The translations under genes and the position numbers were made by a program. A stretch of 64,000 bases of DNA, taken from the sequence record LT960552.1, one strand, 5' to 3'. This document shows, piece after piece, positions 28,201 to 45,172 of this stretch; positions within the stretch are counted from its first letter, which is position 1; every line of letters starts with the position of its first letter. The notes below the pieces were generated by a model that worked only from the letters and a program-made list of their open reading frames with translations, had not been told where the DNA came from and did no database searches.

Positions 28201-31200
28201 CGTTTATTTCAACATTAGTTAAAGTACCATCAGATTTGTATTGTTCATATCCATAATAAAGTTGATTATTTAAAGCTACAGTACTATTCTGTCTTGCAAC
28301 AGCTTGCCATATAACAACATTTCGTGAAAGAGTCTTAGTATATAATGTCCATGTACCATCAGCATCAGTAATTCTAATTACATCACCTTCTTGATAGTTT
28401 TTCTGGTTAGCAGATTCGATACTAACTTCATCAGTATACGATGTATTCTCACTATAACCAACATCATACCAATCAGCTAATGTCCAGTACTGTGTCATGT
28501 CTAATGATGTACCTAATGATTCAATATAATCTGATTGTTTAATCATTTTATGTTGACCTTCTCCGCGATTTTCTAAAGTAATATAAACCGCTGTACCACC
28601 AGTACTTGGTGAATTCATCAAGTGGATATAGTTGTTTTCATCAAAATGTACAAAGTACACAGTTGTAGAATTTAATGGAGATGGTAGTGTACCATTAGTA
28701 CTTACCAATACGGCATCATTTTCAACAAATACATCTACACTAGGATTGATAACCAATTCATTATTATAATTTAGTACTTTGAAACTTATAAGATTTGGAT
28801 TTTGTTCTTCAGTTTTTACATTGAAAACATCATTCATAACAACTGTATTGGTTGTCATGTTCACCGTTTTATAAATTGCGTTTGCAGAATCTACAAATGT
28901 TCTACGAGCTTCAATAACATCTTTGAACCACGTTTCATTTGGTAAAATACCAGTGTCATTTGTTGGATAATGTAATTCTTGAACCGTACCATTAGGTAAT
29001 GTTTCTTGAGACATTAGAGAATTCCACATTGAATCCCAAATTATAGGATTGAAATTATAATCCATACCTTCTCTACATAATTGGAACTGTTCATGTTTAA
29101 CCACTTCAGTTGCATTATTTTGATACGTAATGGATAAAATACTCTTATCATCAGTTATATCTTGTTGTAATCCACTTATAATAAATGAATTTTGGCTAAT
29201 TGGTGCAAACCAAGGAGCATTTAATAATGAAGGATTTTGTATAGTACGAGATAATTCATTACAAGGTCTGTTTCTATTTTTAACTTTAGGAACATAAATT
29301 GTATTCTTAACCCAAAAATAATATACAGTCTTATAAGAATCAGTACTGTCATCATATTCTTGAAATTCAGAATAGAAATCATCAACCGCTTCACCACTTG
29401 GAACCCACGCTGTGCTGTCTTTATTCAATTTAGATTGACGAACGCAGTATTTTTCCCATTCATATGGAAGTACTGGAGAAGCAACCCATTCTAAAATATT
29501 AATTTCAGAATTTGGTAACAATTTACCCCAATTATAACGTTTATATTCATTTGTTGCAGTAATATCAACATTTCCATTTCCATCATATAATGGGCGTGTA
29601 TAATCCATAAAGAATGCATTTGTAGTATTCCACCACACTAATCCAACTTTTTCTGAACCCCATGCTTGTGTTTTTTCATCTTCACTATTATACTTAGCCG
29701 GATCTACAGTACTTACATATGTAATATCAGCCATAATAGAACCAGGAATAACACCATTTATTGGATCAAATGTATTCATGTACAATTCAGTTACATTAGA
29801 TGTACGATTATAAGTTGTTGGTCTAACAAATAAAGTACTTTCTGGTGCATCAAATGAATATTTTTTAGAAATATATGCATCTTTATCTGCACTTGAACTG
29901 AATCGATTTATGTAACGGTATAAAACAGGTTTTCCATCAGTAAATGAAATATTGTTAGTTACATCAAGTGGAATAACAAAACTAGTAGGATCAGAACCTG
30001 TTGTGAAATATTGTGTCTCTGCTTTTAATAAATCAGGCATATATTCGGATTTGTCAACAAAGAAGAAATAATCTCCGTCTTCCATACCATGTGCTGCACT
30101 AAGTTGTAGAGTACAATGATTCCCTGGATAGTTTTCACCATCTCCAATTGGAATAATTGATTCCAATGTAATTCCAGTATTATCAAGTTCAAAAATATTC
30201 CAATTATTATCCATATCGCGAAGAACCCATACTGAAGTTGGGGTGTTACCTGTATCATTGATATAATTTAATCTATCAACATATGCAGTTGTAAAATCAC
30301 GAGTACTGTATGAAACTTCATTTAATGTAACTGGACCAATATCAGGAAGATTAATATTCTCACTTTTTCCAGAACGCATTGGGAATGCAAACTGGCCTAA
30401 TGGTCGAGTAATCCAACGTGAATCTACACCTTGTGTTCCATAATAAATTATGTTATTATTATCAGTGTCAGAAGTTGCATTTTGATCAAATGTAAACAAT
30501 TGAGGTTCTTGTGCAAATTCATTATTAATCAATTGGAATTGTAAATGTTTTTTACCATAGATATTACCATATTCACCAATTTTAAATGCCCATTCTTGTA
30601 ACGCTTTATAGTTGTCTGTATTATAAGATTTAGAAACGCGAAGTACTCTTTCAAATACTTGGTTAGTCCCTTTATCTCTAATATATCCTTTATAAAAATC
30701 AACTTGTGATGTATCACTAGTAATCATTTGAGAAATGTAATCACGTGTTTGGAAGCCAATAACATGACGTGATAAATTGCGTAATGTTACATTATCAACT
30801 GGATTATCATTATCATAATAATGTTTAAAATCATCAACTAGTTTTTCAAAGTTTGGTAATGTGCCAGATTCTAAAATAATGAAACCTTTAGCTTCCAAAC
30901 GACCATTCCATGAACCAGTTACATATCCATACATTTTTAACATTTCATGCACTGAACCATATTTTGGAACATATAAATCATTACCAAAAATTGTTCTATT
31001 ATCAAATATAACAGCATGTTCATAAGCTACTACGCTAACACGAAGTAATGCCATTCGTTTATCTGAACTATCATCAATTCTAACGCTAAACACATTACCA
31101 ATACGTGAAGTATCAATTTCAAATGGACGTATACCAGTGTTAGTATCATCTAGTAATGACCATACTCCACCATTGAATTGTGTAATAGAAAGTACTGATC

Positions 31201-34200
31201 CAAATGCAGTTCCAAATTTTGCATTTTTTGTGCTTGGAGATACTGAAATAAAATCACCTACTGCTGGATTTGTAGAACTCCAAGATATAAAATCTTTTCC
31301 AATTACTGTCCAATCTTGTGTTACACCATCATCATTAACATCTTCAAAAATCCATCCATTATCTTCAAGGTATTGACCATATCCACATAAGAATGTATAT
31401 ACTTCTTGGAAAGTTTTTAATAATGTTCCATATTCATACGATTCATATTCATTTAAGTAATCACTATAATGAATTACTGAACGCTTACCAACTGTAACTG
31501 ATGTTCTTCTACCAGTTTTATTAGGTAATTTATAAGTTAATGTTGCACCTACTAAATCATAACCACTAATAGAATAACCAGAACCAGTCCATTGAATTTT
31601 TATTGCACTCATAGTTTCATCACGGAATGATGAACTCTTAACTAAACCAATATGTTGGTTCTCTTGTGAAATTAATCCAAATGAATCAGAACTAAATGTT
31701 AGCTGATCTTCTTTAGTATATCCACCAATTCTATGTCCTACATTTACATACGATGAACGTAAAATATCACCATAGTTAGTTGTAACATTTTTATTTTGGT
31801 ATATTAAATAATCACTTACCCATGTTTGATATCCTAGTATACGTTGATTATTTTCAGAGTTAACTAAAGTAGTACTGTTAAAGTTTAAACGTAGATTAGA
31901 ATCTCCATATAAGAATTGTTTTCCATCATTGGTAATAGTTTGTATAGTACTTCCTTTTGTATCATAGAAGTAGTTTGCAAATTGTCCAGGTTTAGCACGT
32001 AACAATGCCATTGCATTATCATATGCGTACATTACTGTATTCATATATGTGAATTCCATGTCACCCATGTCACCATATGACCAAGGTTCACTTATATGAT
32101 TTAATGCTCCACTAACTAATCCTAAGACTTCTGGAGCAATAATAGTTAGTTCACTTATTTCTTCACCATCAGTTGCAAAGTTTCCAGTACCAGTTATTTT
32201 AAATGGTTGTGTACCAAAACGTTTATATCTATCATACTGACCAGCACGATTACCATGTAAAATAGTACCAGTACTAGCATCACCTTGTAATCCGGTAGTA
32301 TCCCATAATCCACTAGGAACTAAATCACCATGTTCATCTGTTACATATGCTTCATATACATAAACATATTCAGATGTACCTTGGCCTAATCTAACTTTAG
32401 TAGGTTCATATTCCTGATTGAACCAATCTGGACGTTGTGAGAACCCAAACATTTCCCAAGGATGGGTATGTGGGCGATATGTACCGAACATGTCAGTATA
32501 AATTGCTCTCCATGAGCCACGAGCTGGTATATTAGTAGGTTGACCATCAACAACATAAGTTGAACCTGTATAGTTCCATGTCATCCAATTAGATTGATCA
32601 TAATCATGAGTACTGTTATCAATTCCATTGGTTGCAATGAAGTTTACATAACCACGCAATTCTAATTTTATATATTCATCTAAACTATATTCAGTATTAT
32701 TGAAATATGGAGTTGGTGAAAGTAAATCTTTATCCATTGGTGGTTGGTAATCGATAGATTTAAATGTATTGTCTATACTATTAAAAATTCTGTTCTCTAA
32801 TTCATAGATAACATCATCCATTAGGTCAACACCGTTTATTACTCTATATGCTTTACTAATAATTCCCATATGGTCGATATTATAACAACTCATTTCTCTA
32901 CCTGCTTGAAGATAGGTAGATTTTTCTGGACGATATGCTTTTAACAATCCTAAAAATTGTGGAGTTGGTGGAATAAAGGTTTTAGTAACAGTTGAATTAG
33001 AACCTACATTATCTAATGCAAATGGGAAAGAATTATCTTTACCTAAATTAATTATTCCAAAAATAGTATCAACAATATTTGATGCACTGTCAGTAATGAA
33101 TGCTTCTGGATTTTTATTATATAAATTCATCATTTGTGTGTTGAATTTATTTTTAAATCTAAAATATTCATATTGAGTAAAGATAATTGCTTCAAATAAA
33201 TCTAGATTTTCATTAGCACTGTGTAACATCAATGGTAATAAAGATGTTTCATTTTGAATAATTTTAGTACCAACTGAATTATCAACCAATCCCAATGATA
33301 AACGTTCTTCATAGTTGTTTAAATCATTTACAGAACCTTCAGTTATGTTTTTACCAATTATATCCAAGAAGTGTGGAGTATAATAACCTTGATGAATAAA
33401 ATCAATAAACTCATTATGTGGGTTATTTTGTAAATTAATTGGTATTTGATACGTTCCTAATTTTGGATCAGGAATTTTAGTTGGGCTATATGTAACAATT
33501 TCAATAATACTATCTTCATTGATACTTACATCCGAATTAAACACAACATTTTGTACATTTCCATCAGAATTCAGTACTGTAGTGTACTTAAATGTTTTTT
33601 CACCATCAAAAAATACTTCTAAACTTTCAGACGTGTCTAATGGATTGATCTTTTGTGCCAATTCATATGTATGTTGGAATCTATCTGATTGTACAGCATC
33701 ATTTGTTGTTAAATTCCATTTCATGAATGTTGAATTTGTTGGTTTATAGTACTGATAGGTATTATCAGTAGATACAACATATGCATACATCCCTTCTATT
33801 GGATTTTTAAATGTATTCATTTCGTTAATAGTATTGAATACACGATACATTGACATTTTATCAACTTCTGGTACTTGTCTAACATATTGTTTAGATTGTT
33901 CTTCACTTCTTACCCAATCGGATTTAAGATTTTGTACTAAATCACCATCGGTATTTTTACTTATAACATTATAGAAATATAAACCTTGAATTTCTGTGAT
34001 TGCACCTGCTTTGGAATAAGAATATCTAATAGTTTGTAAGAAGTTTTCAAAAATATAATAATTATAATCACTTAATTCTACATGTTTATTGTAAATCTTA
34101 TCTTCACCGTAGTTAAAATTGATTTTTAGACCAAATAAACTTGAACCGTTGAAAGTACTGCTAGGATATACGGTAGTGTTGTTAAGTTTGAAGCCATGTT

Positions 34201-35269
34201 TATCATATAATTGAAATAATGGGAACGTGTTTGTTCCAGGTTTAGCTTGAGCAGCTACCCAATTTCTACCATTCCAATAAACTGATGTATTTCCATACAT
34301 GTTACCACTTTTTATTAATATAACATCGCCATTTAATGGTTCACCTGTTGGACGTTCAGTTGTTTCTTCATCTTCGTCTAGTACTAAACCATAAACTCTA
34401 GATCCATCAGACATTTGCTTGATGAAAACTTTATATATACGGTTATTTTCCCCAGGGTTACCAATACTGGTGAATAAAATTCTGTCCCCAGCTTGTAATA
34501 TGTTACCATCAACACGAACATTATTACTAACATCTTTTTGTACTATATCTTCTGGCTTAACGGAATCAGAAAGATAGTCTACAACCCCACGGAATTGAGT
34601 TCCGTAGTTCATTAATTCGATATTTGTATTAAATTCGATAATTGGTGCTTGTGCACGACGAAAACGACCACTTGTTGCTAATTGTTCAGTAACAATAGTA
34701 CCATCTGGTAGTGATTGTCCAATTGTGTACCAGAAATTTTGCAATGACCAAGTATTACCATTTAAGGCACCTCTTTGCATTACTATATAATCTGGTTCAA
34801 TACCATATTCGTTTTCAGAATCCCATAGATAGGAGCTAAAATTTTGTAATTTGTTTGGATTTATCGGTGGAGTCCATGAGTAGAACTTACCACTTAATAA
34901 ACGTGCTTGGTTATCGGTTAATGCACCGTAATGCCCCAAATAACCAACTAAATCTGGATAGAATTGGATCGAACGAACACTTGTATCTGCATTTCTTGAA
35001 ACATATGCAGTACTAAATTGATAATCCTGACGTTCTAAATCTAATTCGTGTAGGAATATCTTTCCTGCTGCTGCTGGTGAACCACGATCACCAATATAAC
35101 CATCAATGATAGTTTCGTCTGAAGGATTAAACCATTGTTGGATAATATCATCACAGAACATTTGAATTTGTTCTAGACCTTGCATCCATTCAGGCAATCT
35201 CTTTATGAACAACTTCTGATTAACAGCTTCGGTTACTTTTGTAAGCTGAAATTTAAATTCGTTCGCCAT
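25250..35269 (-). CDS. Very large virion protein, putative baseplate wedge subunit
   Basis: About 3340 aa, uninterrupted, in the baseplate operon downstream of gp6-like; late promoter and GGAG RBS before ATG 35269. The specific family cannot be determined by eye. Confidence 0.65.
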   Translation of the reverse strand: MANEFKFQLTKVTEAVNQKLFIKRLPEWMQGLEQIQMFCDDIIQQWFNPSDETIIDGYIGDRGSPAAAGKIFLHELDLERQDYQFSTAYVSRNADTSVRSIQFYPDLVGYLGHYGALTDNQARLLSGKFYSWTPPINPNKLQNFSSYLWDSENEYGIEPDYIVMQRGALNGNTWSLQNFWYTIGQSLPDGTIVTEQLATSGRFRRAQAPIIEFNTNIELMNYGTQFRGVVDYLSDSVKPEDIVQKDVSNNVRVDGNILQAGDRILFTSIGNPGENNRIYKVFIKQMSDGSRVYGLVLDEDEETTERPTGEPLNGDVILIKSGNMYGNTSVYWNGRNWVAAQAKPGTNTFPLFQLYDKHGFKLNNTTVYPSSTFNGSSLFGLKINFNYGEDKIYNKHVELSDYNYYIFENFLQTIRYSYSKAGAITEIQGLYFYNVISKNTDGDLVQNLKSDWVRSEEQSKQYVRQVPEVDKMSMYRVFNTINEMNTFKNPIEGMYAYVVSTDNTYQYYKPTNSTFMKWNLTTNDAVQSDRFQHTYELAQKINPLDTSESLEVFFDGEKTFKYTTVLNSDGNVQNVVFNSDVSINEDSIIEIVTYSPTKIPDPKLGTYQIPINLQNNPHNEFIDFIHQGYYTPHFLDIIGKNITEGSVNDLNNYEERLSLGLVDNSVGTKIIQNETSLLPLMLHSANENLDLFEAIIFTQYEYFRFKNKFNTQMMNLYNKNPEAFITDSASNIVDTIFGIINLGKDNSFPFALDNVGSNSTVTKTFIPPTPQFLGLLKAYRPEKSTYLQAGREMSCYNIDHMGIISKAYRVINGVDLMDDVIYELENRIFNSIDNTFKSIDYQPPMDKDLLSPTPYFNNTEYSLDEYIKLELRGYVNFIATNGIDNSTHDYDQSNWMTWNYTGSTYVVDGQPTNIPARGSWRAIYTDMFGTYRPHTHPWEMFGFSQRPDWFNQEYEPTKVRLGQGTSEYVYVYEAYVTDEHGDLVPSGLWDTTGLQGDASTGTILHGNRAGQYDRYKRFGTQPFKITGTGNFATDGEEISELTIIAPEVLGLVSGALNHISEPWSYGDMGDMEFTYMNTVMYAYDNAMALLRAKPGQFANYFYDTKGSTIQTITNDGKQFLYGDSNLRLNFNSTTLVNSENNQRILGYQTWVSDYLIYQNKNVTTNYGDILRSSYVNVGHRIGGYTKEDQLTFSSDSFGLISQENQHIGLVKSSSFRDETMSAIKIQWTGSGYSISGYDLVGATLTYKLPNKTGRRTSVTVGKRSVIHYSDYLNEYESYEYGTLLKTFQEVYTFLCGYGQYLEDNGWIFEDVNDDGVTQDWTVIGKDFISWSSTNPAVGDFISVSPSTKNAKFGTAFGSVLSITQFNGGVWSLLDDTNTGIRPFEIDTSRIGNVFSVRIDDSSDKRMALLRVSVVAYEHAVIFDNRTIFGNDLYVPKYGSVHEMLKMYGYVTGSWNGRLEAKGFIILESGTLPNFEKLVDDFKHYYDNDNPVDNVTLRNLSRHVIGFQTRDYISQMITSDTSQVDFYKGYIRDKGTNQVFERVLRVSKSYNTDNYKALQEWAFKIGEYGNIYGKKHLQFQLINNEFAQEPQLFTFDQNATSDTDNNNIIYYGTQGVDSRWITRPLGQFAFPMRSGKSENINLPDIGPVTLNEVSYSTRDFTTAYVDRLNYINDTGNTPTSVWVLRDMDNNWNIFELDNTGITLESIIPIGDGENYPGNHCTLQLSAAHGMEDGDYFFFVDKSEYMPDLLKAETQYFTTGSDPTSFVIPLDVTNNISFTDGKPVLYRYINRFSSSADKDAYISKKYSFDAPESTLFVRPTTYNRTSNVTELYMNTFDPINGVIPGSIMADITYVSTVDPAKYNSEDEKTQAWGSEKVGLVWWNTTNAFFMDYTRPLYDGNGNVDITATNEYKRYNWGKLLPNSEINILEWVASPVLPYEWEKYCVRQSKLNKDSTAWVPSGEAVDDFYSEFQEYDDSTDSYKTVYYFWVKNTIYVPKVKNRNRPCNELSRTIQNPSLLNAPWFAPISQNSFIISGLQQDITDDKSILSITYQNNATEVVKHEQFQLCREGMDYNFNPIIWDSMWNSLMSQETLPNGTVQELHYPTNDTGILPNETWFKDVIEARRTFVDSANAIYKTVNMTTNTVVMNDVFNVKTEEQNPNLISFKVLNYNNELVINPSVDVFVENDAVLVSTNGTLPSPLNSTTVYFVHFDENNYIHLMNSPSTGGTAVYITLENRGEGQHKMIKQSDYIESLGTSLDMTQYWTLADWYDVGYSENTSYTDEVSIESANQKNYQEGDVIRITDADGTWTLYTKTLSRNVVIWQAVARQNSTVALNNQLYYGYEQYKSDGTLTNVEINVRKALALFKNSFYSYQSRLVFDMVHYVHTEQTVVDWVFKTSYIYVIGLEQSLQQNYVNDNLINQIVDYFEEVKPYRTKIRSQIEQKTSNTDEMNGLLNDLDPNGYVFVNGTWIKTQDDIWDVEYAQFNPITNKWEVHGSLPADFVYPNRRFQESYETLVYDNFQCTPDDNLGNRLVLEGVNNSFMTNANDILPAGSHYKLQRYSYTYPQIDYVSINRSVLSGMSAFYPDMDDNGEVQTEIDKQLKLLGTDIDATNLFESILEQISKQTYESNSSVGIATQYNQYNTLANRRRLYTSLSNSSISQEMKCPFKGRVLNDNTNTRLPFGYSGSNWETYGYIMYSYALYEKYVDIVKNNNPTFTDSQINDYLMYEYGLYPWKYDLEEMDEDGNHIGKVYLDTLYVLTSMRNLYNPDNLDQYEISKQILALPTVDMYCMVMIPRKMAYVLNVDTREFLTVPSDVSLKDFMELAFISGDVVSLAEPNLNDLPLDINSPLYSNIQNVITGMNNLQYYDDMNAFDSLGLESQTQDMVYFASGVVNLTQDPIFVDVTDINPLGLDAAQMRFTVNGYSYDTSGNTQLRSQGNFQIEGLVLQNPYNRKEAIVSIPRYTQAIEYMSRNLISKNEINYSYQVKDVINTTGTIRLVQKNDFKVGEKVMVFTPETEDYDILMLDNTWNTILPVNNIKNGTRPRIFTVSAVNGDTIRIGGLNFNSTYDSQSDILMDSGKATSINIVRITSFTDNEFVSNGVNLYSTERSYRISILDYDLFYDRMLISNQYTDNYTDDDYDNWYVSNEIVDINGTEVDHGFYSPIYGKGVLSELVNTKMDDSLQIFVYEYNVSEINPVKSGNTWSYSSALIDNVYIDSNNASLVVAYIDTIEKREFVVKPLAISQATILDGVMNITPSNNDYIIAVSSELVELRNNNHMARGIHGTVENNFVLGTTYTEQAVVLGLEDNMEVYRNNYPQIPLDTFSTGLVVSGSQIGQLL

Positions 35270-35307
35270 TATAATCTCCAATAAAAAATTCTTTTTCTCA
35301 TTTGTTT

Positions 35308-35348: not shown

Positions 35349-38300
35349 TTATTTTCCAATATTAATGTTGCTTTTTGCTAAAGAGTTAACTATAATAACG
35401 TTATCAACTGAAGCAGTGTTAATAAAGAGTTGATCTGACTCACATGGAATTTCAAACAGCTCTCCAAACTTAGAACTTGGATTTTGTGGAACAATCACCA
35501 CAGATGCAATCTCTGTACTTAAATTTATATGAATATAAGTTGCTAATTCAGTAAAATAGAAGCTTTCACCAAAATCCCAATTATCAACACCAAAGAAATC
35601 ATTAGTAATTGATATAACACGTTGTCTAATTTCATCATCACTCAATGTACTGTTAGGTAATTTAATAACTTTAAAATCAGCACGGTAATCTGCATCAGCA
35701 GTATCCCCAAATAATTTAAGATAATTCGCACTATGCCATATAGTACTATCACTTATGACAATTTTATTATCTACATCAACAAACATCTCTTTTAATTCAG
35801 TACTTGTTGGTGGTTTAGGGAAATCTGTACCATTTGCTTGTTTTAACCATATATCAACTTCAGTTTTATATGAATTAGTTAATACATACATATCAATTAA
35901 GTTAGTTTTACTTGGATCTATTCTATTATCATCTGGTGCATAATGTTTCCAATGATAATTCAATGCAACACGTGCATCTTTTCGTATAAAGAATGAAGTA
36001 CTAACATCTTCATATCCATAAAAATCTAATTTAACAGTTTCATCTGCATTTTCATCACTCATATTAACTATTGCTCTAGTAAATGCTTCTTCAACAGTTA
36101 TTGGTCTTTCATCAGATGGTAAAGTCATATTTGATAAGAAGTTATTCAATCTATCATTATTATTTCCAACAGTTTGTTTAATAAAATAGGTTGAACCATT
36201 ATATTCATATCCAATTACAAATCCAGAACCTTTAGAATATAAATCAGTCATTGAAGTACTTCTAATATTAACATTACGCAATAAAGCTGCTTTTCTATAT
36301 GCAACAACTTCAGTATTTGCTTGTGCAGCAGTATAAATCCACGAAGTATCTAATAATGTAAACGTATTATTTGATGGTTCTATAACATCAATGGTAAAAT
36401 CAGAATTTTCTTGGAAGAAGATCCACTGTTCGTATTTTATTTTGTCTTCACCAGTCCATTGTGGTACAATTTTTCTAAATTGATTTGGACTTAATGGAAT
36501 ACCATTGGTGTCCCGTTCTGAACTAGTAATTATAACACGAGAACCATCAATATATCCATTTTCCTGATTAACAGTTTTAATTATTTGGAATGATTCATCA
36601 TTAGTATAACCAGAATTATTAATAAAATTAGTATTGTAAGATAATACAACGATTTTATCAGATTGAACTGTTCCAGTACTAATATCACTTATATTTTCAG
36701 TACTAACAAAATAAAAACGAACTTTTTCACCACCAACAAAAATATAATCCACTCCATTTGAAACAAAATCCCAAGATTCAGAAGTATAAGAAGAATTTAT
36801 TAATATTGGATATGATACGTTATTATAAACAATAGTATTAGTAGTATAAGTTCCTTCTATTGGAATCCATGTCAAAGTATTAGGATCATAAATCAAAACG
36901 AAATCAGTTTTCTTATCTAAAGTACTTGCTATAGTTTGTACTTCAACATTAGAAAATTTTACACGGAATGGTTTAATAAACTCAGTACATAATTGATTAC
37001 TACCAATTGGTAATGATAATACTAGAAAATCACCAATAACATCTATAACTGATGTCCATACATCAACACCAGCAGATGTTGAAAAATTCAACAAAGTACC
37101 AATATCATATATTACAGGAATACCAGAAGATATCAATCTACCATATGTATTAGATGTATAACTAGAATTAAATTCAGGTGTCCATTCTTGATTAGTAATT
37201 ACAGAAACTGTATTTGATGGAAATTCTTGATATAATTGAATTACAGAATTATCACCAATCAATGGTTGAATACTATCAATAACAATTGAGGTATTAGATT
37301 TCGAAGAAGGTAATAGTACTGAATTTAATGATCTAATTTCTTCTCTATAAACACCACCATCATCAGTAAAGATATCAGTATTTTGATATTTTCCAGTTGG
37401 GTCGTTAATATCTATAAATCTTGATTGACCTGAATATATTCTATTAATTGCTTTAGCTTTAAGTACTGTGTTTCCCAACATTAAAGGTGCAATATTATAA
37501 TCTTCCCCATTCACAAAACGGTTTTGAGTATAATATAATTGTGGTGCACGGTCTTTAATTTGTTCTAATGTTTCTCTTGATTGAGCACGTGAAGATTGGA
37601 ATTGTAAGCTAAATTTAATATCCAAAGTACTACTTTCAAATTCAGATTGTGAATCTGTTCTATATACATATTTTATAGATTTATTTTGAATATCAGTAGT
37701 TTTTATTGTGTAAGTTTCTCCATTACTAACTCTATACCATATTCTATATGACCCACGTGGCACTTGTCCACTTCGAGCATCAGGAAATTTAAGTGTTATT
37801 TGGTCATTATCACGAGTTGTTACTGAATAAATATTTTTCAATCGACGGTCAACTGAGTTATATGCAATTGATTCCATTGCTGGAACTCTAGTCCATTTTG
37901 TTCTAACTAAACCGTCCTCTGTAATTTCCTGTACCCATACGTCAATTTCATTAATATTGTTTGTATCAATATTTTGTACACGGTTTTCTATTCTCTGGTC
38001 ATATTGGAAATCACTGAATGTTAAATTTCCTTGTTTGAAATATACAAAAAAACCAGTATTTGGTGATTCAAATCCATTACCATCATTACTATATATAATA
38101 TGTTTTTGTTCTTGTGGCTGTGGATGTCTTTCTTCAGCTACACCAGTACTTGATAAATCAGGATTAACAACTTCAAATGTTACTGATTCACCATTAATAT
38201 TTGCAGTGAATGGAATATTTGGAGAACTCATTGGTATTGTATTCATTCTATATAAATGATTAGTTATACCATTTACTGTTACTTTTTTGACTGGATATCC

Positions 38301-38810
38301 AAATTGGTTAGTATTAATTAATATACTATTCATTACTAATATAAAATTTTCATACCAGTTATTATCACTTTGGTCATTCCAACGTATAGTTTGGTTTTTT
38401 AGTGAAGTACCAAAACTATTTTTAATTTCTTGGTTAGTTTTAACTTCAGTTACTTTAGCAAGTGCACGGCCTGGATATGCACGTTTTGGTGCATATGAAA
38501 TCATTTTTGCTAATTTCAGTACTGAAGCTCTACGTTCTGCTGTATCTAAAAAGTTTTCTCTACTATTGAGATCCATTCTAAATGCTAAATTCTGACCTAT
38601 TAATGCAATTGTATCTAAAATAAAAATGAATTCATCATTTTCAATCCAGTCATTAAATGAATCAGGATAGGTTAATCTTAAGTAGTTAACCATACTTTCA
38701 CGTATTGTATCAAAATCGTATGCAGTAAGATTGATTTGAGCGAAAGACTCATAAACTTGTTTCCAATCTTCAGCAGCATACAAATTTGATTGTCTTTTTT
38801 GTTGTGCCAT
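35349..38810 (-). CDS. Baseplate wedge subunit (T4 gp6-like)
   Basis: YDFDTIRESMVNYL, ENFLDTAERRASVLKLAKMISYAP, QNRFVNGEDY motifs of gp6/baseplate J. Start MAQQK at 38810 with GAGG RBS. Confidence 0.85.
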   Translation of the reverse strand: MAQQKRQSNLYAAEDWKQVYESFAQINLTAYDFDTIRESMVNYLRLTYPDSFNDWIENDEFIFILDTIALIGQNLAFRMDLNSRENFLDTAERRASVLKLAKMISYAPKRAYPGRALAKVTEVKTNQEIKNSFGTSLKNQTIRWNDQSDNNWYENFILVMNSILINTNQFGYPVKKVTVNGITNHLYRMNTIPMSSPNIPFTANINGESVTFEVVNPDLSSTGVAEERHPQPQEQKHIIYSNDGNGFESPNTGFFVYFKQGNLTFSDFQYDQRIENRVQNIDTNNINEIDVWVQEITEDGLVRTKWTRVPAMESIAYNSVDRRLKNIYSVTTRDNDQITLKFPDARSGQVPRGSYRIWYRVSNGETYTIKTTDIQNKSIKYVYRTDSQSEFESSTLDIKFSLQFQSSRAQSRETLEQIKDRAPQLYYTQNRFVNGEDYNIAPLMLGNTVLKAKAINRIYSGQSRFIDINDPTGKYQNTDIFTDDGGVYREEIRSLNSVLLPSSKSNTSIVIDSIQPLIGDNSVIQLYQEFPSNTVSVITNQEWTPEFNSSYTSNTYGRLISSGIPVIYDIGTLLNFSTSAGVDVWTSVIDVIGDFLVLSLPIGSNQLCTEFIKPFRVKFSNVEVQTIASTLDKKTDFVLIYDPNTLTWIPIEGTYTTNTIVYNNVSYPILINSSYTSESWDFVSNGVDYIFVGGEKVRFYFVSTENISDISTGTVQSDKIVVLSYNTNFINNSGYTNDESFQIIKTVNQENGYIDGSRVIITSSERDTNGIPLSPNQFRKIVPQWTGEDKIKYEQWIFFQENSDFTIDVIEPSNNTFTLLDTSWIYTAAQANTEVVAYRKAALLRNVNIRSTSMTDLYSKGSGFVIGYEYNGSTYFIKQTVGNNNDRLNNFLSNMTLPSDERPITVEEAFTRAIVNMSDENADETVKLDFYGYEDVSTSFFIRKDARVALNYHWKHYAPDDNRIDPSKTNLIDMYVLTNSYKTEVDIWLKQANGTDFPKPPTSTELKEMFVDVDNKIVISDSTIWHSANYLKLFGDTADADYRADFKVIKLPNSTLSDDEIRQRVISITNDFFGVDNWDFGESFYFTELATYIHINLSTEIASVVIVPQNPSSKFGELFEIPCESDQLFINTASVDNVIIVNSLAKSNINIGK

Positions 38811-38842
38811 ATGTTTATACACCTCATATAATAATATAGTAA

Positions 38843-38850
38843 TATTTATA
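38843..38850 (-). promoter_or_regulatory. T4-type late promoter (perfect TATAAATA)
   Basis: Perfect T4 late consensus upstream of the gp6-like gene. Confidence 0.7.
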
Positions 38851-38851
38851 C

Positions 38852-38879
38852 AAAAAGAAAGGCACCCAATGGATGCCTT
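38852..38879 (-). terminator. Intrinsic terminator after the gp25-like gene
   Basis: Minus strand AAGGCATCC-ATTG-GGTGCCTT-TCTTTTT. Confidence 0.6.
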
Positions 38880-39267
38880 ATGCTGCATTAATAAATGCCA
38901 TTCGTTGTTGCGATCTGTTGTCAAATACTAGAGATAATGTTTCAACTGTTTCTAATTGAACATATCTTAATCTCATATCTAACTGATAACCATAAGCAAC
39001 ATTTTGTACTTGAATTGATATCAACAATAATCTTGGATCTTGTGATACTATATTTCTAGCATCAGCTTCTAATAACTGTGCATTACCAGGTCTATCTAGC
39101 TCGAATAATAAATCCCAACCAATAAAACCATAATCAACATCCATGACCCTTTCACCCTTTCTTGTATTAAAGTGATTAATAAGATCTTGTTTTACCAATT
39201 CAGCATCGTATAGTACTACAGTTTTGCCAACTATTGGAGATGCAAAACCTTTAAATGTCACAGCCAT
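38878..39267 (-). CDS. Baseplate wedge protein, sheath initiator (T4 gp25-like)
   Basis: LVKQDLINHFNTRKGERVMDVDYG...LLFE...DPRL pattern of the GPW/gp25 family. Confidence 0.9.
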   Translation of the reverse strand: MAVTFKGFASPIVGKTVVLYDAELVKQDLINHFNTRKGERVMDVDYGFIGWDLLFELDRPGNAQLLEADARNIVSQDPRLLLISIQVQNVAYGYQLDMRLRYVQLETVETLSLVFDNRSQQRMAFINAA

Positions 39268-39277
39268 ATTTTATTCC

Positions 39278-39766
39278 TTATAGCGATTCAACAATTTTTG
39301 CTAATTTCTCAGCACGTGATGTTGTTTGTTTATACCATGCAGAATTTCTCATTCCTGCTGCTGCACCTTTATAATCACCACGACCCATACATGAAAGAGT
39401 ATTTTTGAATTGTGATACTTTACCTTTACCCATTTGGAATACCATTTGAGTTAGTACTTTTTGTAATTCAATTCCACCAGTCATATTATATTGTTCGTAT
39501 AATGATTTTGCATCAGCAACTTTAGAAGCTAAATCCTTAGCTAATAGTTCATTTGCTTGGCTTTCGGTTAAACCTGTTTTAAAGTTTTCACCTTCAGTTA
39601 ATAAATGTCCATACCCAATTGTTGGATATCCTAAACTATCTTTATAAGTCCAAAACTTATTATCCTTATAATAACCCAATTTAGATTGATAAGATATAGT
39701 TCCTTCATATAATTTAATATCACTTAATAGATTAGGATCAGAACTTTTTAAAACCCAATTACTCAT
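39278..39766 (-). CDS. T4-type (GH24) lysozyme, stand-alone; putative endolysin
   Basis: YEG...YKDSLGYPTIGYGHL (E/D/T triad), MVFQMG, SAWYKQT..RA. Confidence 0.9.
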   Translation of the reverse strand: MSNWVLKSSDPNLLSDIKLYEGTISYQSKLGYYKDNKFWTYKDSLGYPTIGYGHLLTEGENFKTGLTESQANELLAKDLASKVADAKSLYEQYNMTGGIELQKVLTQMVFQMGKGKVSQFKNTLSCMGRGDYKGAAAGMRNSAWYKQTTSRAEKLAKIVESL

Positions 39767-39798: not shown

Positions 39799-39806
39799 TA
39801 TTTATT
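39799..39806 (-). promoter_or_regulatory. T4-type late promoter (AATAAATA) for the stand-alone lysozyme
   Basis: NATAAATA box overlapping the stop codon of the spike gene. Confidence 0.5.
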
Positions 39807-42483
39807 CACATGCCTCAACTCGTCTAGCCATAACTTCAGCACGTCTAGGTGTTTGACTATACCATGCAGAATTTCTTATACCTGCCGCTGCACCTTTATA
39901 ATCACCACTTGCTAATGCTGCTAAAGTATTTTTAAACTTAAGTACTTTACCTTTACCCATTTGGAATACCATTTCAGTTAGTACTATTTGTACAATATAA
40001 GGTGTTTTCATATTATATTGTGCATATATTGATTGTGCATCTCTAACAGTTCTTACTAAGTCCTTTTGTAATAAAGCATCAGCAGTCGGTTCATCGATAC
40101 CACCAGGGAAATTATCATTTGCAGTTATTAAATGACCATATCCTATTGTTGGATAACCTAAACTATCTTTATATATCCAGAATCTACCACCACGGAAATA
40201 ACCGATAGCTGTTTGATATTGAATTGTTCCTTCAAATTCTTTAACTTCTTCAATCAATTTTCCATCAGATGCAGTTACCTTCCAATCTATAGAAGTTTTA
40301 TCAAGTGATGACAAATCCTCGGCTGGTGCTCTAGCAGTACTATTCGTATTTCGTTTAGTTGTGCTAGTTCTTCGTGGAACATGTCTAGAACCACGTTGTG
40401 AATACACTGAACCAATACTGTTAACCGTAGTGATAACAACTAATTCAGAACTATTTTCAGAATATCCAGTTACTGGTGCAGGATTTAAATTGGATGGTTT
40501 ACCCGCAATTAAACTTTTATTTGCTGCACTTGCTCCCTTTCCTGTTACAGTACTATAAAATAATCCAGGATCTACTGTTCCACTAAAACCATAAATGTTT
40601 GCAGATTGTAAACGTATTTCAAAATCAAATACTCCATTTGCAGTACCAATTTTTTGACCTTTAGTTACAGTATCTTTATTATTAACCGTAATGTTAATAT
40701 CATAAAATACAGATTTGTATCCAGTAGGATGTGTTATTATCAAACCACCTGTTGAAATTTTAGTAACTAATCCACCATCTGGTGCAACAACATCACCTTT
40801 AGCTTGGATAATCCATCCATTACGATTTGTGGTTGAACCGGATTGTGTAGGAACTCCTTTCCCCCAATAACCAAATTCACGAATTGTTCCAGTACAAGGC
40901 ATAAACATTTGCAAACCTTCGTATGTTGTGGTATAACTAACTGTTGTATTATCTTCACCACCATCACTAACAACTAAATCTTGAGAAAGTACTTGACCTA
41001 CTTCAGAAGTACTGTTAACATGCTGTACAGTCTCTTGTGCTTGCTGTTGTGGGGCTTCAGGAGCCACGTCATTAGCAGGTTCAGCCGTAGCAGGGGCATC
41101 GGCACTACTGTTTCCACCGCCCTGTACAGGGGGTGCCATTTGATCACTATGGTTACTAGCATCAACAAATGATTGGTGTAAATGAATATGGTCAGCTAAA
41201 CCAACTGATGGAGTTTTAAAATCAGGTGCACCCATTGGTGCAGTACTTGCAGTACTATCACCCTTAATGGTTAAGTTATTGCCGCCACCACCGATATTAA
41301 CGGCTGAACCTTTAATATCAACAGTACTTGATGCAGTTATTGCAGTATTTGAACCTGAAGTAATATTAGTACTTGAACCTGATTGTACTCGAATACTTGC
41401 ACCAGCAACTAGACGTAAATCTGCCCCAGCATTTATAACAACTTGACCATTAACGATAGCATCCAATTTACCAACTAGATTAAGTTTAGTATCTCCTTGA
41501 ATGCTCATATTTAAATTTCTACCTGCTTCAAAGTTAATATCACGAGAAGCAGTAAAGTTAAAATCTTCTTCAGTTCTAAAAGTAATACTTTTAGTAGCAT
41601 GAACCAAAATTTGTCCATCAACTGTCATTTCAAAACGTGCAGTACCATCTCGATTTATTAAAAATACGTTACCATCACTTTCTGATAGTAAAAACTGTGC
41701 ACCACTACGTGTTCTAAGTATTATTCCTTCATTTTTTCGAGTCCCAACTGCTGTATCGTTTACTGGATTATTAAATTGAGTATTTTGATAACTATCTTGG
41801 TCATCATCCCAATTTGGAGCAGTTAATTCGGCATCAGTATATCCATCATCCATTACAAACGTATTACCACGTGGAGAAGCCATTCCATATGTAGTACTGA
41901 TAGTTTGTCTAGTACTACTTCTGTTTGGTACACCTTTTTGTGCATCATAAAGAAGATTTTGTTTTTTCAAACCTTCCACTAATGGAACGTTTACATATTT
42001 TTGGTCTAATTGTGTTTGTATTGTATTTCTATCATAATCAGTTATTGGTACTGGCATATCATAACCACTATTTGGCATATTTTGTGATGCAGCACCAGGA
42101 ACCATTGTATTCATTCGGTCATCATAACCACATGCGAACCACCAACATTCATGAATATTACCATTAGCAAAGAAAATTGCGACTGTTACACCAACATCAG
42201 GTGGTACAGCCCAAAATCCATAGCCTTTTGGAAATTGTTGATATGATTCAGCTCCTGGTGTTCCTGGTGTTCTTCCAGCGAATGGTGAAAGATATGATGC
42301 AGTAAGCCATGAACCTTTTGAATCCTTATCACTTTGAGAATTTTGTACCCAAACTTTCAATTTACCAGTTTTTTTAGGATCACGATTGTCCATAACAGTT
42401 GCTAACTGAACAAATTGTGGATTAAATCTGGCATTCTGATTTTTAGAAAACTCCATACTTTTGCTAGTGCTATTATCACCCAT
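39802..42483 (-). CDS. Central spike / baseplate hub protein (T4 gp5/VgrG-like) with C-terminal degenerate M23 and GH24 lysozyme domains
   Basis: N-terminal OB-fold (DPKKTGKLKVWV, GFWAVPPDVG), beta-helix repeats, HIHLH tip motif, M23-like segment, and C-terminal lysozyme FEG...YKDSLGYPTIGYGHL. Confidence 0.85.
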   Translation of the reverse strand: MGDNSTSKSMEFSKNQNARFNPQFVQLATVMDNRDPKKTGKLKVWVQNSQSDKDSKGSWLTASYLSPFAGRTPGTPGAESYQQFPKGYGFWAVPPDVGVTVAIFFANGNIHECWWFACGYDDRMNTMVPGAASQNMPNSGYDMPVPITDYDRNTIQTQLDQKYVNVPLVEGLKKQNLLYDAQKGVPNRSSTRQTISTTYGMASPRGNTFVMDDGYTDAELTAPNWDDDQDSYQNTQFNNPVNDTAVGTRKNEGIILRTRSGAQFLLSESDGNVFLINRDGTARFEMTVDGQILVHATKSITFRTEEDFNFTASRDINFEAGRNLNMSIQGDTKLNLVGKLDAIVNGQVVINAGADLRLVAGASIRVQSGSSTNITSGSNTAITASSTVDIKGSAVNIGGGGNNLTIKGDSTASTAPMGAPDFKTPSVGLADHIHLHQSFVDASNHSDQMAPPVQGGGNSSADAPATAEPANDVAPEAPQQQAQETVQHVNSTSEVGQVLSQDLVVSDGGEDNTTVSYTTTYEGLQMFMPCTGTIREFGYWGKGVPTQSGSTTNRNGWIIQAKGDVVAPDGGLVTKISTGGLIITHPTGYKSVFYDINITVNNKDTVTKGQKIGTANGVFDFEIRLQSANIYGFSGTVDPGLFYSTVTGKGASAANKSLIAGKPSNLNPAPVTGYSENSSELVVITTVNSIGSVYSQRGSRHVPRRTSTTKRNTNSTARAPAEDLSSLDKTSIDWKVTASDGKLIEEVKEFEGTIQYQTAIGYFRGGRFWIYKDSLGYPTIGYGHLITANDNFPGGIDEPTADALLQKDLVRTVRDAQSIYAQYNMKTPYIVQIVLTEMVFQMGKGKVLKFKNTLAALASGDYKGAAAGIRNSAWYSQTPRRAEVMARRVEACE

Positions 42484-44845
42484 TGTTACTTCCTTCCGTG
42501 TTATCTGTATAATTTTCTTTACGTCTTAATGAACGAATTACTAAACCACCAGTTATTTGTTGTGTAAATGTTCCATTACTATTGAATTCACTTACAACTT
42601 TATTAACTCTATATAATGTTTGTGCAAATACTGATGTTTGATTGATTTCTAATATACCAGTACTATCACTAATAGCTACTATTGGTTTTAGATTCAATAA
42701 TAAGTAAGTTTCAGATGTAAGATAGTTTGCAAAATGAACATCACTAGGATCTGGTTTAATATCTTCACCTTGTACCGCACGTTTTAGATATTTCATGAAT
42801 GAATAATCACCCCAACCTAACCAGAACGGGTCACCTAGTACTTTCATGTCTAGTTTAGCTAAAAATGATCGATTATAATAATTATCACGAACTAATCTAC
42901 GTTCAAGTTCGTCATCTGAGCTATTATCACCCTTAGTACCAGAGTTTGTTTGTTTTATATTGGTAGGTTCAACTGGAATACTATTAACCTTTGGAATACC
43001 TATACCATTAGTCCCATCTACTGTTAAATCGAAGTCTTTTCTAAAATCTTCAATATATTTTGGCAAAGATGGTGATAATGATAGGTTATATTCGTCTTGA
43101 TCTTCATCTCCTTCAGTTGGTGTTTGCTTTTCTTGAGCTAAATTTTGTGCATCTCGAATGAATTGACGTTCTTCATCATTTAAAGTTCTACCATTTTCTT
43201 GATCATGTTCCAAACTTCTTGATTTTTTCCAAATATCACTAAAACCATCAGCGGTATTGTATTGTTGACCCGCAAGTTCTAATAATTCGGCTTTATGTGT
43301 ACCAGCGGAGTTATCTTGGTCAATTTGTGATTGTGGATTACGAACAACTGCTAAATTAAATCCCTGATCGAATTTTAAATCCAAATTAACAATTTCATTG
43401 TTCAAACCACTAAATTGATAATCATATCTCTTAGCATTAATCTTTGGAATTTTTGATTGGTCAGTTTCATCTATAATTTTGTCAGCATTTTGCCTAAAGT
43501 ACTCTAAATTGAACCGTTCTTCATGCAAATCGTCTTTTGAGGTTACATCACCGATTTTATATTTTAAAACATAGAAATAACTTTTAAATGCAGATGTATT
43601 TCTGATATTATCATATCCAACATATCTTGATACTGGTATAATGTTCACAAACTGTCTACGTTTATCAGTACTATCATGTAATGGCATACAACAATCTAAT
43701 ACATCATCAATTACTCGTGATACTGCTAAACTAGCTGCCCATGAGAATTGTTTTGCTGCATCTTGTCCGTTTCCAGTTTGATTAACTTCTGGACTTTGTT
43801 TGGAATCATAGTTAATTGTCATATTAGCTAATTCATTTGGACATGAAATCTCAAAAAATTTATTATCTGCAAAAGCTGCATATTTAAATCGTAAGTATCC
43901 GTATTGATCGGTTGCTATTTTATTTAAATGGTCTTCTAATTGTTGTAAAAATCCACCAAACGTTGCAGTAGTACAAGTATAAGGTTCCATTAACGTCCAA
44001 TCTTTATTTTCCATAATACCACCACGAGTACTTGTCATAGTGAAGGTATAATTCATAGTACCGCCTGATGGAGATGCAGAACCTGATATAGTATTGATTC
44101 TCATACCCCATTTTCGATTTAAACCTGGTATAATCATTGGTTCGCCTGATACCCCATCATAACCAACGAAATTAAGTTCCATTACTAATGGAACATCCAT
44201 AAATTTATTATATCCAAGTTCATTTGATAGTACTACTAGGTCATCAAATAAACTCATACCTCCATTTTCTTGAACTTCCATAGTACATGAGTTTAATGAA
44301 TAGTTAGAGGTAAGTCCAGGTGTTGCTGGACCAGCAGATGTGATTTTAACACTATTAATACTATATTTTCCGGTTACACCACTTTGTGCAATTACATATT
44401 TTGATATTGCTGCATCAGAGTTTTCAAAAAATAATTCATATTCTTGATGATTCATTGTATATAATGAAAAATTCCATGTATAATTATGATATTGTTGTAA
44501 AGGGTTATCATATGGTAAAATCATTTCATTTAAATTTAAATTTGAATATGTTCCATCAGGAGCATTAAATGATTTTTGTTTTTCCTCGGTAGCTCTTAGT
44601 ACATAACCATTAGGTGTACCAGGAATCATCCCTTTTACTTTAGCAGAAGTAGTATCAGCAGCATTTTTAATAGTATTAACAGCAGCATTACTAGCAGTTA
44701 CTGCATTATTTTTAACATTTTGTGCAGTTGTTCCTATATCATCAGCAGTTAATAATAATTGGTCGATTGTACCTTCAACGTTGTCTTGAGCTGCTTGAAC
44801 TTTTCCATTAGTTGCTTTATTAACTATATTATTAATAGACGCCAT
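42476..44845 (-). CDS. Baseplate hub protein (gp27/gpD-like, putative)
   Basis: 789 aa directly upstream of the spike gene; NPLQQYHNYTWNFSL and LDMKVLGDPFWL motifs typical of large-myophage hub proteins. Confidence 0.6.
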   Translation of the reverse strand: MASINNIVNKATNGKVQAAQDNVEGTIDQLLLTADDIGTTAQNVKNNAVTASNAAVNTIKNAADTTSAKVKGMIPGTPNGYVLRATEEKQKSFNAPDGTYSNLNLNEMILPYDNPLQQYHNYTWNFSLYTMNHQEYELFFENSDAAISKYVIAQSGVTGKYSINSVKITSAGPATPGLTSNYSLNSCTMEVQENGGMSLFDDLVVLSNELGYNKFMDVPLVMELNFVGYDGVSGEPMIIPGLNRKWGMRINTISGSASPSGGTMNYTFTMTSTRGGIMENKDWTLMEPYTCTTATFGGFLQQLEDHLNKIATDQYGYLRFKYAAFADNKFFEISCPNELANMTINYDSKQSPEVNQTGNGQDAAKQFSWAASLAVSRVIDDVLDCCMPLHDSTDKRRQFVNIIPVSRYVGYDNIRNTSAFKSYFYVLKYKIGDVTSKDDLHEERFNLEYFRQNADKIIDETDQSKIPKINAKRYDYQFSGLNNEIVNLDLKFDQGFNLAVVRNPQSQIDQDNSAGTHKAELLELAGQQYNTADGFSDIWKKSRSLEHDQENGRTLNDEERQFIRDAQNLAQEKQTPTEGDEDQDEYNLSLSPSLPKYIEDFRKDFDLTVDGTNGIGIPKVNSIPVEPTNIKQTNSGTKGDNSSDDELERRLVRDNYYNRSFLAKLDMKVLGDPFWLGWGDYSFMKYLKRAVQGEDIKPDPSDVHFANYLTSETYLLLNLKPIVAISDSTGILEINQTSVFAQTLYRVNKVVSEFNSNGTFTQQITGGLVIRSLRRKENYTDNTEGSNNG

Positions 44846-44857: not shown

Positions 44858-45172
44858 TTAAGAAATATTTCTAGAACCATTTAACCAATTTTGCACACGC
44901 TGTAATGTTGGTATTAAAATTGTTGTCCCACTTTTAAAATCATAAATTGGATCAACTAAAAGATTAGGGTTTAAAAGTGCAAATACATAATATAAGCGTT
45001 CATTACCATATAAATTTTTAGCTAATCTCCAAGGTTGTTCATCATACTGATTCGGAATTGTATATTCAATATCGGAATCAGCCGGATATAAAGGTGCAGG
45101 TAAATTATACTCTAGATACCATGTTTGTGTAGTTTTAGCATACGGAGAGTACTGACTGTATTTTGATGCCAT
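44858..45172 (-). CDS. Baseplate wedge protein (T4 gp53/LysM-like)
   Basis: YTIP..YDEQPWRLAKNLYGNERLYYVFALLNP...DPIYDFKSGTTILIP. Confidence 0.8.
   Translation of the reverse strand: MASKYSQYSPYAKTTQTWYLEYNLPAPLYPADSDIEYTIPNQYDEQPWRLAKNLYGNERLYYVFALLNPNLLVDPIYDFKSGTTILIPTLQRVQNWLNGSRNIS

Follow-up and report, generated by a model that had tools for sequence, protein, structure and literature searches.

A Rak2-like jumbo-phage central spike with a degenerate LytM-fold domain and a GH24 lysozyme placed after its predicted beta-helix

The 64,000-nucleotide stretch of sequence record LT960552.1 analyzed here, which we refer to as the window, belongs to Yersinia phage fHe-Yen9-03, an Eneladusvirus and Rak2-like jumbo myovirus of ∼352 kb. 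On its minus strand the window encodes a central spike protein of 893 amino acids (aa) that is a 100% match to g237c of this phage. We found that the C-terminal part of the spike contains a domain predicted to have the LytM (peptidase M23) fold, with its zinc and catalytic positions substituted across the family, and then a GH24 lysozyme, and that both follow an invariant HxH motif at the end of a predicted beta-helix. The interpretation we favor, with somewhat more confidence than doubt, is that the protein resembles the evolved VgrG spikes of type VI secretion systems (T6SS): tail contraction would carry three tethered LytM-GH24 modules to the periplasm, where the lysozyme would cut and the inert LytM groove would dock. 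The gene is a single intact open reading frame (ORF), as judged from the ORF list and its translation, it is annotated as "T4-like phage baseplate hub + tail lysozyme," and its product is matched from end to end by phrog_13211. All coordinates below are those of the window, from which the coordinates of the record differ by an offset of exactly 124,000. The gene and its parts, with predicted local distance difference test values given as pLDDT and the ratio of nonsynonymous to synonymous substitution rates as dN/dS, are as follows.

39802..42483, minus strand: central spike gene, 893 aa, baseplate hub/tail lysozyme (phrog_13211; LT960552.1 g237c)
42130..42426, minus strand: OB-fold, residues ∼20-118 (Pfam Phage_base_V at 27-74, 24.3 bits against a cut-off of 23.8)
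41644..42129, minus strand: middle region, residues 119-280 (column conservation 0.80, the highest in the spike)
41239..41643, minus strand: triple-stranded beta-helix of the gp5/VgrG type, residues 281-415 (Pfam DUF2345 at 284-410)
41134..41238, minus strand: end-of-helix segment with HxH, residues 416-450 (conservation in 78 homologs; alignment A5)
40930..41133, minus strand: linker 1, residues 451-518, rich in polar and small residues (composition; conserved PANDV and QDL motifs)
40483..40929, minus strand: degenerate LytM/peptidase-M23-fold domain, residues 519-667 (PDB profile, AlphaFold2, Foldseek, columns of 78 homologs, dN/dS)
40306..40482, minus strand: linker 2, residues 668-726, predicted to be disordered (pLDDT below 50 for 670-718)
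39805..40305, minus strand: GH24 (T4-type) lysozyme, residues 727-893 (Pfam PF00959 at 765-877, 36.8 bits against a cut-off of 22.3)

The domain order is thus OB-fold, VgrG-like beta-helix, HxH, a linker of ∼70 aa, the LytM/M23 domain (519-667), a linker of ∼60 aa, and the GH24 domain (727-893). A preliminary description of this DNA, made from the letters alone and concerned with positions 39802..41300 (the C-terminal 499 residues of the spike), had already read the order as OB-fold, helix, DHIHLH, M23-like segment, and GH24; Pfam and HMMER matches bear this out, and all of the residue strings quoted in that description are found in the translation of the spike.

The M23-like segment runs from MPCTG (residue 528) to FEIR (residue 624). 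When the LytM segment alone was compared with the PDB, the best match was the M23A enzyme pseudoalterin (E 8.7e-5), followed by LasA. A domain-only profile built from alignment A3 (19 loci) matched SpoIIQ (E 1.9e-6), LasA (2.8e-6), and DipM (1.5e-5), followed by pseudoalterin, TagE/Csd, and zoocin A, with the matches named here ranging from E 2e-6 to 3e-4, and by further M23 peptidases; in this PDB search no other fold ranked above the LytM/M23 structures. AlphaFold2 modeling of residues 515-670 from 44 sequences gave a pLDDT of 94.7 and a predicted template modeling score (pTM) of 0.89. When this model was compared with the PDB by Foldseek, the best 50 matches were all LytM/M23 structures, with DipM in the lead at E 8.5e-6 and LasA and EnvC also among the leaders (EnvC LytM: template modeling score 0.67-0.68, root-mean-square deviation 3.3-3.4 Å). 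The lack of a LytM fold in this segment would have gone against the preliminary description; the structure prediction, the PDB profile, and the Foldseek ranking instead provide solid support for a predicted LytM fold in residues 519-667.

To locate the active-site columns, we used HMMER alignments to SpoIIQ, DipM, and LasA together with the residue roles described for DipM (PMC10336132) and the established HxxxD and HxH motifs. The columns were read in 78 homologs, a set of 47-100% identity plus five more distant sequences, and hold the following residues.

R554, zinc-binding His column: Arg in 66 of 78, His in 4
I558, zinc-binding Asp column: Asp in 2 of 78, never alongside His at 554
D595, catalytic His column: Asp, Gly, or Asn, with His in 0 of 78
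V618, column of the first His of the M23 HxH: His in 0 of 78
D620, column of the zinc-binding second His of the M23 HxH: variable, with His in 0 of 78

A complete M23 ligand set is found in none of the 78 homologs, which agrees with the earlier observation that the zinc ligands are replaced. With all five zinc and catalytic positions substituted, the domain does not, on its sequence, qualify as an active M23 metallopeptidase. The residues that are structural for the fold are invariant, including H585, E622, R624, and Gly, Trp, Pro, and Asp positions. Estimates of dN/dS, obtained with dS near saturation for every pair except the closest, were 0.04-0.15 for the LytM domain, 0.06-0.12 for the GH24 domain, and 0.06-0.10 for the OB-fold with the middle region, as compared to 0.18-0.29 for the helix and 0.10-0.39 for the linkers. 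Because the site is substituted family-wide while purifying selection on the domain is as strong as on the lysozyme, its sequence record is that of an old, maintained, and non-catalytic LytM domain. The combination that marks degenerate LytM regulators, namely the fold together with a lost metal site under selection, is therefore present.

Residue R624 is invariant and aligns with DipM R589 (EnvC R405), and DipM R589 is a groove residue required for partner binding (PMC10336132). The EnvC groove residues that binding or activation of the target requires are K321, V324, Y350, V353, V355, Y401, and R405, and the correspondence to them was drawn through the DipM alignment only. On this mapping, the hydrophobic residues I558 and I582 resemble EnvC V324 and V355, and three positions are unmatched: residue 555 is Asn, Tyr, or Ser (K321 in EnvC), residue 620 is variable (Y401), and residue 580 is Gly (V353).

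In the N-terminal half of the spike, the Phage_base_V match that is just above the cut-off in our protein extends over residues ∼22-116 in relatives and reaches up to 36.9 bits. The middle region that follows had no match in Pfam and PDB searches; it sits at the position that the lysozyme occupies in T4 gp5. For the beta-helix, the DUF2345 score is borderline (29.5 bits against a cut-off of 30.7), and the cut-off is reached in relatives. A comparison of the helix with the PDB led to T6SS VgrG spikes (E 1.4e-4 with the single sequence, 5.5e-6 with the profile), with weaker matches to T4 gp5 helix fragments, Pvc8, and a phiKZ gp164 chimera. Taken together, the OB-fold, the helix predicted to be trimeric, the position in a baseplate module, and the presence of orthologs in virions identify the protein, as far as its sequence can, as a central spike of the gp5/VgrG type. 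The order of lysozyme and helix is opposite to that of T4 gp5, as the preliminary description had stated: in HMMER matches, the gp5 lysozyme (231-325) precedes the gp5 helix (473-520), whereas in the fHe-Yen9-03 spike the helix (366-412) precedes the lysozyme (788-883).

The DHIHLH string at the end of the helix corresponds to residues 431-436, and the codons of H432 and H434 span window positions 41182..41190. Both of these histidines are invariant in the 78 homologs, even in relatives that are only ∼35% identical in the helix-end region; H445 and H436, by comparison, are found in 75 and 66 of the homologs, respectively. An HxH pair is the sole universal sequence feature of apex-bearing spikes and the hallmark of apex cages; in gpV and all characterized apex spikes it lies ∼12 residues before the C-terminus, and the same cage also occurs inside trimeric fibers, where it acts as a staple (10.1101/2023.02.25.529910). 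We consider it most likely that the H432/H434 pair would cage a metal ion at the end of the helix. Some matches from the helix-end searches were set aside. The only apex-like entry was a 207-aa "puncture apparatus" protein with a weak E of 0.41, the short 56-residue HxH query returned chance sirtuin matches only, and PDB 4uhv aligned with the helix end through its own C-terminus, which is an artefact of the His-tag in that entry.

At the other end of the protein, the GH24 domain matches T4 gp5 lysozyme with E 3e-12, and the matches to T4 gp5 and T4 lysozyme range from 3e-12 to 1e-10. In a model of residues 496-893, the mean pLDDT of 10-residue blocks within the GH24 domain is 88-97. The predicted structure has E751 as the last residue of the first helix (741-751), D773 in the next loop, and T779 in a strand, as in T4 lysozyme. 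When HMMER aligned the domain with gp5 without gaps, a Gly seemed to stand at the site of the catalytic Glu; the two-domain model, which places E751 there, overturned this. Conservation is 77 of 78 for each of E751, G752, and D773 and 52 of 78 for T779. Between the Glu and the Asp lies an insertion of ∼13 residues (753-765), which forms a short helix in the model and is also present in a free-standing paralog; the ortholog of Xanthomonas phage XaC1 (P0064) is without most of it. Based on the model and the catalytic residues, the GH24 domain of the spike is most likely active.

The free-standing paralog, a GH24 lysozyme of 162 aa, is encoded directly downstream of the spike.

39278..39766, minus strand: free-standing 162-aa GH24 lysozyme (PF00959, 42.5 bits)

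It is 58% identical to the spike GH24 domain over 159 residues (E 7e-72) and has its own ribosome-binding site, an AGGAGG upstream of the ATG. The free lysozyme adjoins the spike in loci L082 and L086 and in the P0074 locus and is absent from this place in L083, L084, and L085. In Rak2-like phages, its CBB ortholog was not confirmed as a virion protein (PMC5259590).

The two linkers that separate these parts are not featureless. The stretch at 446-518 had been described as a Q/A/P-rich linker; its composition (Q 9, A 9, V 9, S 8, and P 6 of 73 residues) makes it only moderately rich in these residues, and its conserved motifs, in which A470, D472, and D502 are invariant in a 38-sequence set, mean that linker 1 is not merely of low complexity. 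The pLDDT of residues 496-518 is 32-35, and the distance from the HxH to the LytM domain varies from 73 to 136 residues across the homologs. Linker 2 contains an almost invariant motif, IGSxYSQRGSRHVPRR, within residues 687-706 (window 40366..40425), in which G698 and P703 are present in 78 of 78, S699 in 75, and R697 in 74 homologs; the conservation of this segment is 0.74 as compared to 0.36 for the next stretch. Candidate roles for the motif are a processing site, a strand that would form only in the trimer, and a peptide that would dock in the LytM groove. The distance from the end of the LytM domain to the catalytic Glu is 96-119 residues in the 78 homologs.

Our current hypothesis for how these parts would act is as follows. 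Residues 1-450, comprising the OB-fold, the middle region, the trimeric beta-helix, and the HxH pair at its end, would form a puncturing device, and two flexible tethers would carry a cell-wall module made of the inert LytM domain and then the GH24 muramidase with its catalytic residues. Tail contraction would drive the spike through the outer membrane, so that three copies of the module would reach the periplasm, where the lysozyme would cut glycan strands and allow passage of the tube. The LytM domain would not cut; it probably acts as a binding or control module, with the conserved former active-site groove as the docking site. The groove could have as its partner the peptide stems of the wall or a hydrolase that it positions or controls; the candidate hydrolases are a host autolysin, the free paralog, and the lysozyme of the spike itself. 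The solved degenerate LytM domains with protein partners are EnvC-AmiB, DipM-AmiC/SdpA, SpoIIQ-SpoIIIAH, and Csd1-Csd2, and such domains mostly dock proteins rather than bind peptidoglycan. The groove of DipM stimulates both an amidase and a lytic transglycosylase (PMC10336132).

Several observations weigh against this hypothesis. On the spike itself, Pfam Peptidase_M23 matches residues 559-615 with E 7e-4 and 20.2 bits, which is below the gathering score of 28.7, although two orthologs exceed the threshold (P0073 with 30.1 bits and P0076 with 33.4 bits). Active M23 enzymes conserve the Arg and the hydrophobic residues of the groove as well, so that these residues are no proof of a regulator role. 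The terminal HxH position of apex spikes is not shared by our spike, in which ∼460 residues follow (440-522 in all 78 homologs), and the motif may for this reason be an internal staple rather than a tip. In addition, PDB searches with the 56-residue segment alone and with a profile of residues 250-455 both failed to find P2- or phi92-type spikes. The AlphaFold model of the LytM-GH24 region (496-893) has a pTM of 0.45, disordered linkers, and no confident interdomain contact.

These points also bear on the preliminary description, which had placed the lysozyme and the M23 domain beyond an HxH tip. In the sequence, both domains are C-terminal to the HxH, which is found in 78 of 78 homologs; given the missing similarity to apex domains and the HxH staples inside fibers, the tip itself is something we infer. 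The same description had proposed a cleavable or tethered cell-wall-attack cargo. The architecture does correspond to a cargo behind a needle on two linkers that AlphaFold leaves disordered, and the interpretation as a whole is partly supported: cleavage of the cargo, binding to peptidoglycan, and activation of host amidases would all go beyond the likeness in fold to DipM and EnvC.

What the groove contacts is the main point on which alternative explanations differ. The LytM domain could be a non-catalytic wall-binding module whose groove holds peptide stems and anchors the tethered lysozyme, much like the binding domain of an endolysin. A fold and groove that are preserved while the chemistry is lost, the position next to a muramidase on a flexible tether, and the wall- and elastin-cutting M23A enzymes pseudoalterin and LasA as the best single-sequence PDB matches are all consistent with such a role; however, the grooves of EnvC, DipM, SpoIIQ, and Csd2 dock proteins, and wall binding in DipM and NlpD is performed by separate LysM domains, and we regard this explanation as rather unlikely. 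About equally unlikely, in our estimate, is a role as an in-cis keeper of the phage's own lysozyme: with a linker segment, the free paralog, or the GH24 domain bound in its groove, the LytM domain would keep the muramidase inactive or in place in the virion and release or stimulate it in the periplasm, much as neighboring segments control the gp5 lysozyme of T4. LytM and GH24 are always fused in the same order with the narrow 96-119-residue spacing given above, the 687-706 motif is conserved and yet predicted to be disordered, as expected of a segment that folds on binding, and the DipM groove directly stimulates a glycan-cutting enzyme (PMC10336132). Against this role, AlphaFold gave no confident interdomain contact and left the motif disordered; moreover, GH24 lysozymes generally work without an activator.

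A lower probability is given to the inert LytM domain as a phage-delivered mimic of EnvC or NlpD that switches on the host amidases AmiA/B/C or other autolysins and opens the wall locally. The profile and fold matches led by the LytM regulators DipM, EnvC, and SpoIIQ speak for it, but the active M23 enzymes LasA and the Csd proteins score equally well. A degenerate site under strong purifying selection is in line with it too, as is the invariant R624, whose counterparts EnvC R405 and DipM R589 are required for target binding and amidase activation, but positions 555 and 620 are unlike EnvC K321 and Y401, and the spike has no LysM or coiled-coil part of the kind that targets EnvC, NlpD, and DipM. 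DipM also shows that a single LytM groove is able to stimulate an amidase as well as a lytic transglycosylase (PMC10336132), but the spike already has its own muramidase on the same chain. We place just as little weight on the wider notion of a virus-borne LytM regulator, which would be injected and dock to or activate host autolysins at the entry point, or else gate the muramidases of the phage in the same manner. If true, this would be the first phage virion protein to use the control logic of bacterial EnvC, NlpD, and DipM. Much of the probability that is left after the wall-binding, keeper, and host-autolysin roles falls to a purely architectural contact of the groove within the baseplate.

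An explanation of another kind is that the mature spike would end at the HxH like P2 gpV, with its last 440-460 residues either lost in the course of assembly, as an intramolecular chaperone or a separately released product, or made separately from an internal start. All described apex spikes have the HxH near the C-terminus, T4 gp5 is itself cleaved during assembly, and each linker has conserved motifs at which the chain could be processed. The C-terminal domains are, however, under strong purifying selection, which fits a role in infection rather than in folding alone. An internal start at the invariant M528, which would yield a free LytM-lysozyme, was considered and rejected: no Shine-Dalgarno sequence stands at a usable spacing, as the lone string resembling one lies too many bases ahead of the codon and is not found in distant relatives. 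We consider removal improbable, a little more so than either wall binding or the keeper role and slightly less so than a host-autolysin mimic.

The evolved-VgrG-like spike that we favor can be set against several known systems. T4 gp5 (1k28, 1wth) likewise unites an OB-fold, a trimeric beta-helix, and a T4-type lysozyme in one spike and is part of a gene module with gp25-, gp53-, and gp6-like members. In gp5, however, the lysozyme separates the OB-fold from the helix, which has a separate PAAR protein as its cap, whereas in the fHe-Yen9-03 spike the lysozyme is C-terminal, the helix ends in the HxH, and an extra LytM domain is present. Evolved T6SS VgrG proteins, of which the peptidoglycan-degrading VgrG-3 of Vibrio cholerae is an example, have effector-type domains after the helix, and domains appended in this way travel with the spike; the helix of our protein is closest in sequence to T6SS VgrG. 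It differs from them as a phage virion protein without a gp27-like N-terminal half and with an inert LytM domain and GH24 as its cargo, and since no named evolved VgrG was among the matches, the likeness is architectural only. The iron-HxH spikes of P2 gpV, phi92, and R-pyocin share the OB-fold, the beta-helix, and the universal HxH a few residues past the last rung, but the chain of gpV-type spikes stops ∼12 residues past the HxH as compared to ∼460 here, and no apex-domain sequence match was found.

The cellular LytM proteins DipM (7qrl), EnvC (4bh5, 8c0j), NlpD, and SpoIIQ (3uz0, 3tuf) resemble the spike domain in their LytM fold, lost metal ligands, and conserved Arg, and they are the top structural and profile matches. 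They serve in cell division or sporulation and have LysM, coiled-coil, or membrane parts, whereas the LytM domain of the spike is located inside a phage spike beside a muramidase, and the other EnvC activation residues are in part unmatched. Phage virion proteins with active M23 domains provide another comparison, as an M23-fold domain, sometimes together with a lysozyme, is found in tail or ejection proteins with many BFVD and PDB matches; examples are tape measures, Tal-type tail lysins, phi29 gp13, and cyanophage hub or internal proteins (A4 pre-ejectosome, 9k2v). The HxxxD/HxH zinc site is generally retained in such phage virion M23 domains, whose presumed function is the cleavage of peptide cross-links, whereas the site of the fHe-Yen9-03 spike domain is lost in all 78 relatives.

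The full architecture is kept in all 78 collected homologs (870-984 aa). A tblastn search of 50,697 phage records found it in 73 phages, all of them Rak2-like jumbo phages, and a HMMER scan of 1.84 billion representatives with the LytM domain returned 8 proteins only, which were spikes of 870-980 aa and one fragment. No free-standing or catalytically intact LytM relative was among the 1.84 billion representatives, and a profile search among proteins of 89-282 aa yielded only one fragment. Distant marine relatives of the N-terminal half of the spike (L023-L081) are ∼400 aa long, do not extend past the helix, and have a conserved RVPEHHPW(K/L)G at their end in place of an HxH. In two scanned marine loci, the spike is followed by a separate GH24 gene of ∼240 aa and then by an HNH endonuclease gene (in L025, for example, 2920-4131, 4133-4864, and 4873-5433). 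Spikes of ∼400 aa that end after the helix and are accompanied by a separate lysozyme gene indicate, from the sequences at hand, that the LytM-GH24 cargo is a fusion onto the spike core.

The layout of the protein is already known from descriptions of its orthologs RaK2 gp078, CBB_240 (2017), and phAPEC6 gp241, which are 52-80% identical to it (PMC3622015, PMC5259590, PMC7247149). The RaK2 paper (2013) counted gp078 among the largest baseplate lysozymes, with a "very unusual domain composition" (PMC3622015), and the ortholog papers cover the unusual size, the OB-fold, the helix, and the C-terminal lysozyme (PMC3622015, PMC5259590, PMC7247149). A possible central M23 domain with a weak E of 6.5e-4 has also been published (PMC3622015, PMC5259590). 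The CBB supplement lists a VgrG match and gives virion proteins by presence or absence, and CBB_240 was found in virions by mass spectrometry (PMC5259590); phAPEC6 gp241 is virion-associated, with 7 peptides and a predicted mass of 95.9 kDa (PMC7247149). The published accounts do not include the degeneracy of the M23 domain, the invariant HxH, the linker motifs, or the evolved-VgrG logic, and our literature search brought up no publication about phage LytM domains that are degenerate. What is new here is the family-wide degeneracy, an HxH at a distance of ∼460 residues from the C-terminus, the motifs in the linkers, and the resemblance to evolved VgrG.

A phage first meets the cell wall with its central spike, and few studies have addressed how the wall is crossed by jumbo phages. 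Sequenced Rak2-like phages with a member of this spike family number at least 73; their hosts include Escherichia, Klebsiella, Salmonella, Yersinia, and Erwinia, and several of the phages are therapy candidates. A tethered two-domain module would be a third way of arming a spike, alongside the internal lysozyme of T4 and the bare iron tip. As the chemistry of the LytM domain was lost long ago and its evolution is as slow as that of the neighboring enzyme, the domain must do something specific, and knowing its partner would reveal whether phages have taken over from bacteria the use of inactive LytM domains to steer wall hydrolases. An HxH cage with ∼460 residues after it would also serve as a test of the rule that the HxH marks a terminal spike apex.

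The spike gene is part of a baseplate module in which the genes are transcribed in the order gp53-like, 789-aa virion protein, spike, 162-aa lysozyme, gp25-like, and gp6-like. The remaining members are as follows.

44858..45172, minus strand: gp53-like baseplate wedge protein (Pfam Phage_gp53, 23.6 bits against a cut-off of 21; phrog_7145)
42476..44845, minus strand: 789-aa virion structural protein, directly upstream of the spike (phrog_11190, full length)
38878..39267, minus strand: gp25-like baseplate wedge protein (Pfam GPW_gp25, 37 bits; phrog_43)
35349..38924, minus strand: gp6-like wedge protein

The gene for the 789-aa protein and the start of the spike gene share 8 bases. Pfam and PDB sequence searches with the 789-aa protein gave no match; an ORF of 600-930 aa occupies the place upstream of the spike in every related locus, and on account of this conserved position the 789-aa protein may be the gp27-like hub partner of the spike. 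No gene in the locus is broken, and the ORFs on the opposite strand inside the spike gene are small (63-80 aa) and without support. A first megablast comparison gave "two pieces" over 3.2 kb, as if the gene were split or interrupted by an insertion in relatives; this reading was discarded because all relatives have the spike gene as one 2.68-kb ORF and the paralogous lysozyme gene downstream of it accounts for the second piece. Adjoining the baseplate wedge gene, window positions 25250..35281 (minus strand) form one ORF of 3343 aa, which probably corresponds to the 382-kDa virion protein gp245 listed for phAPEC6.

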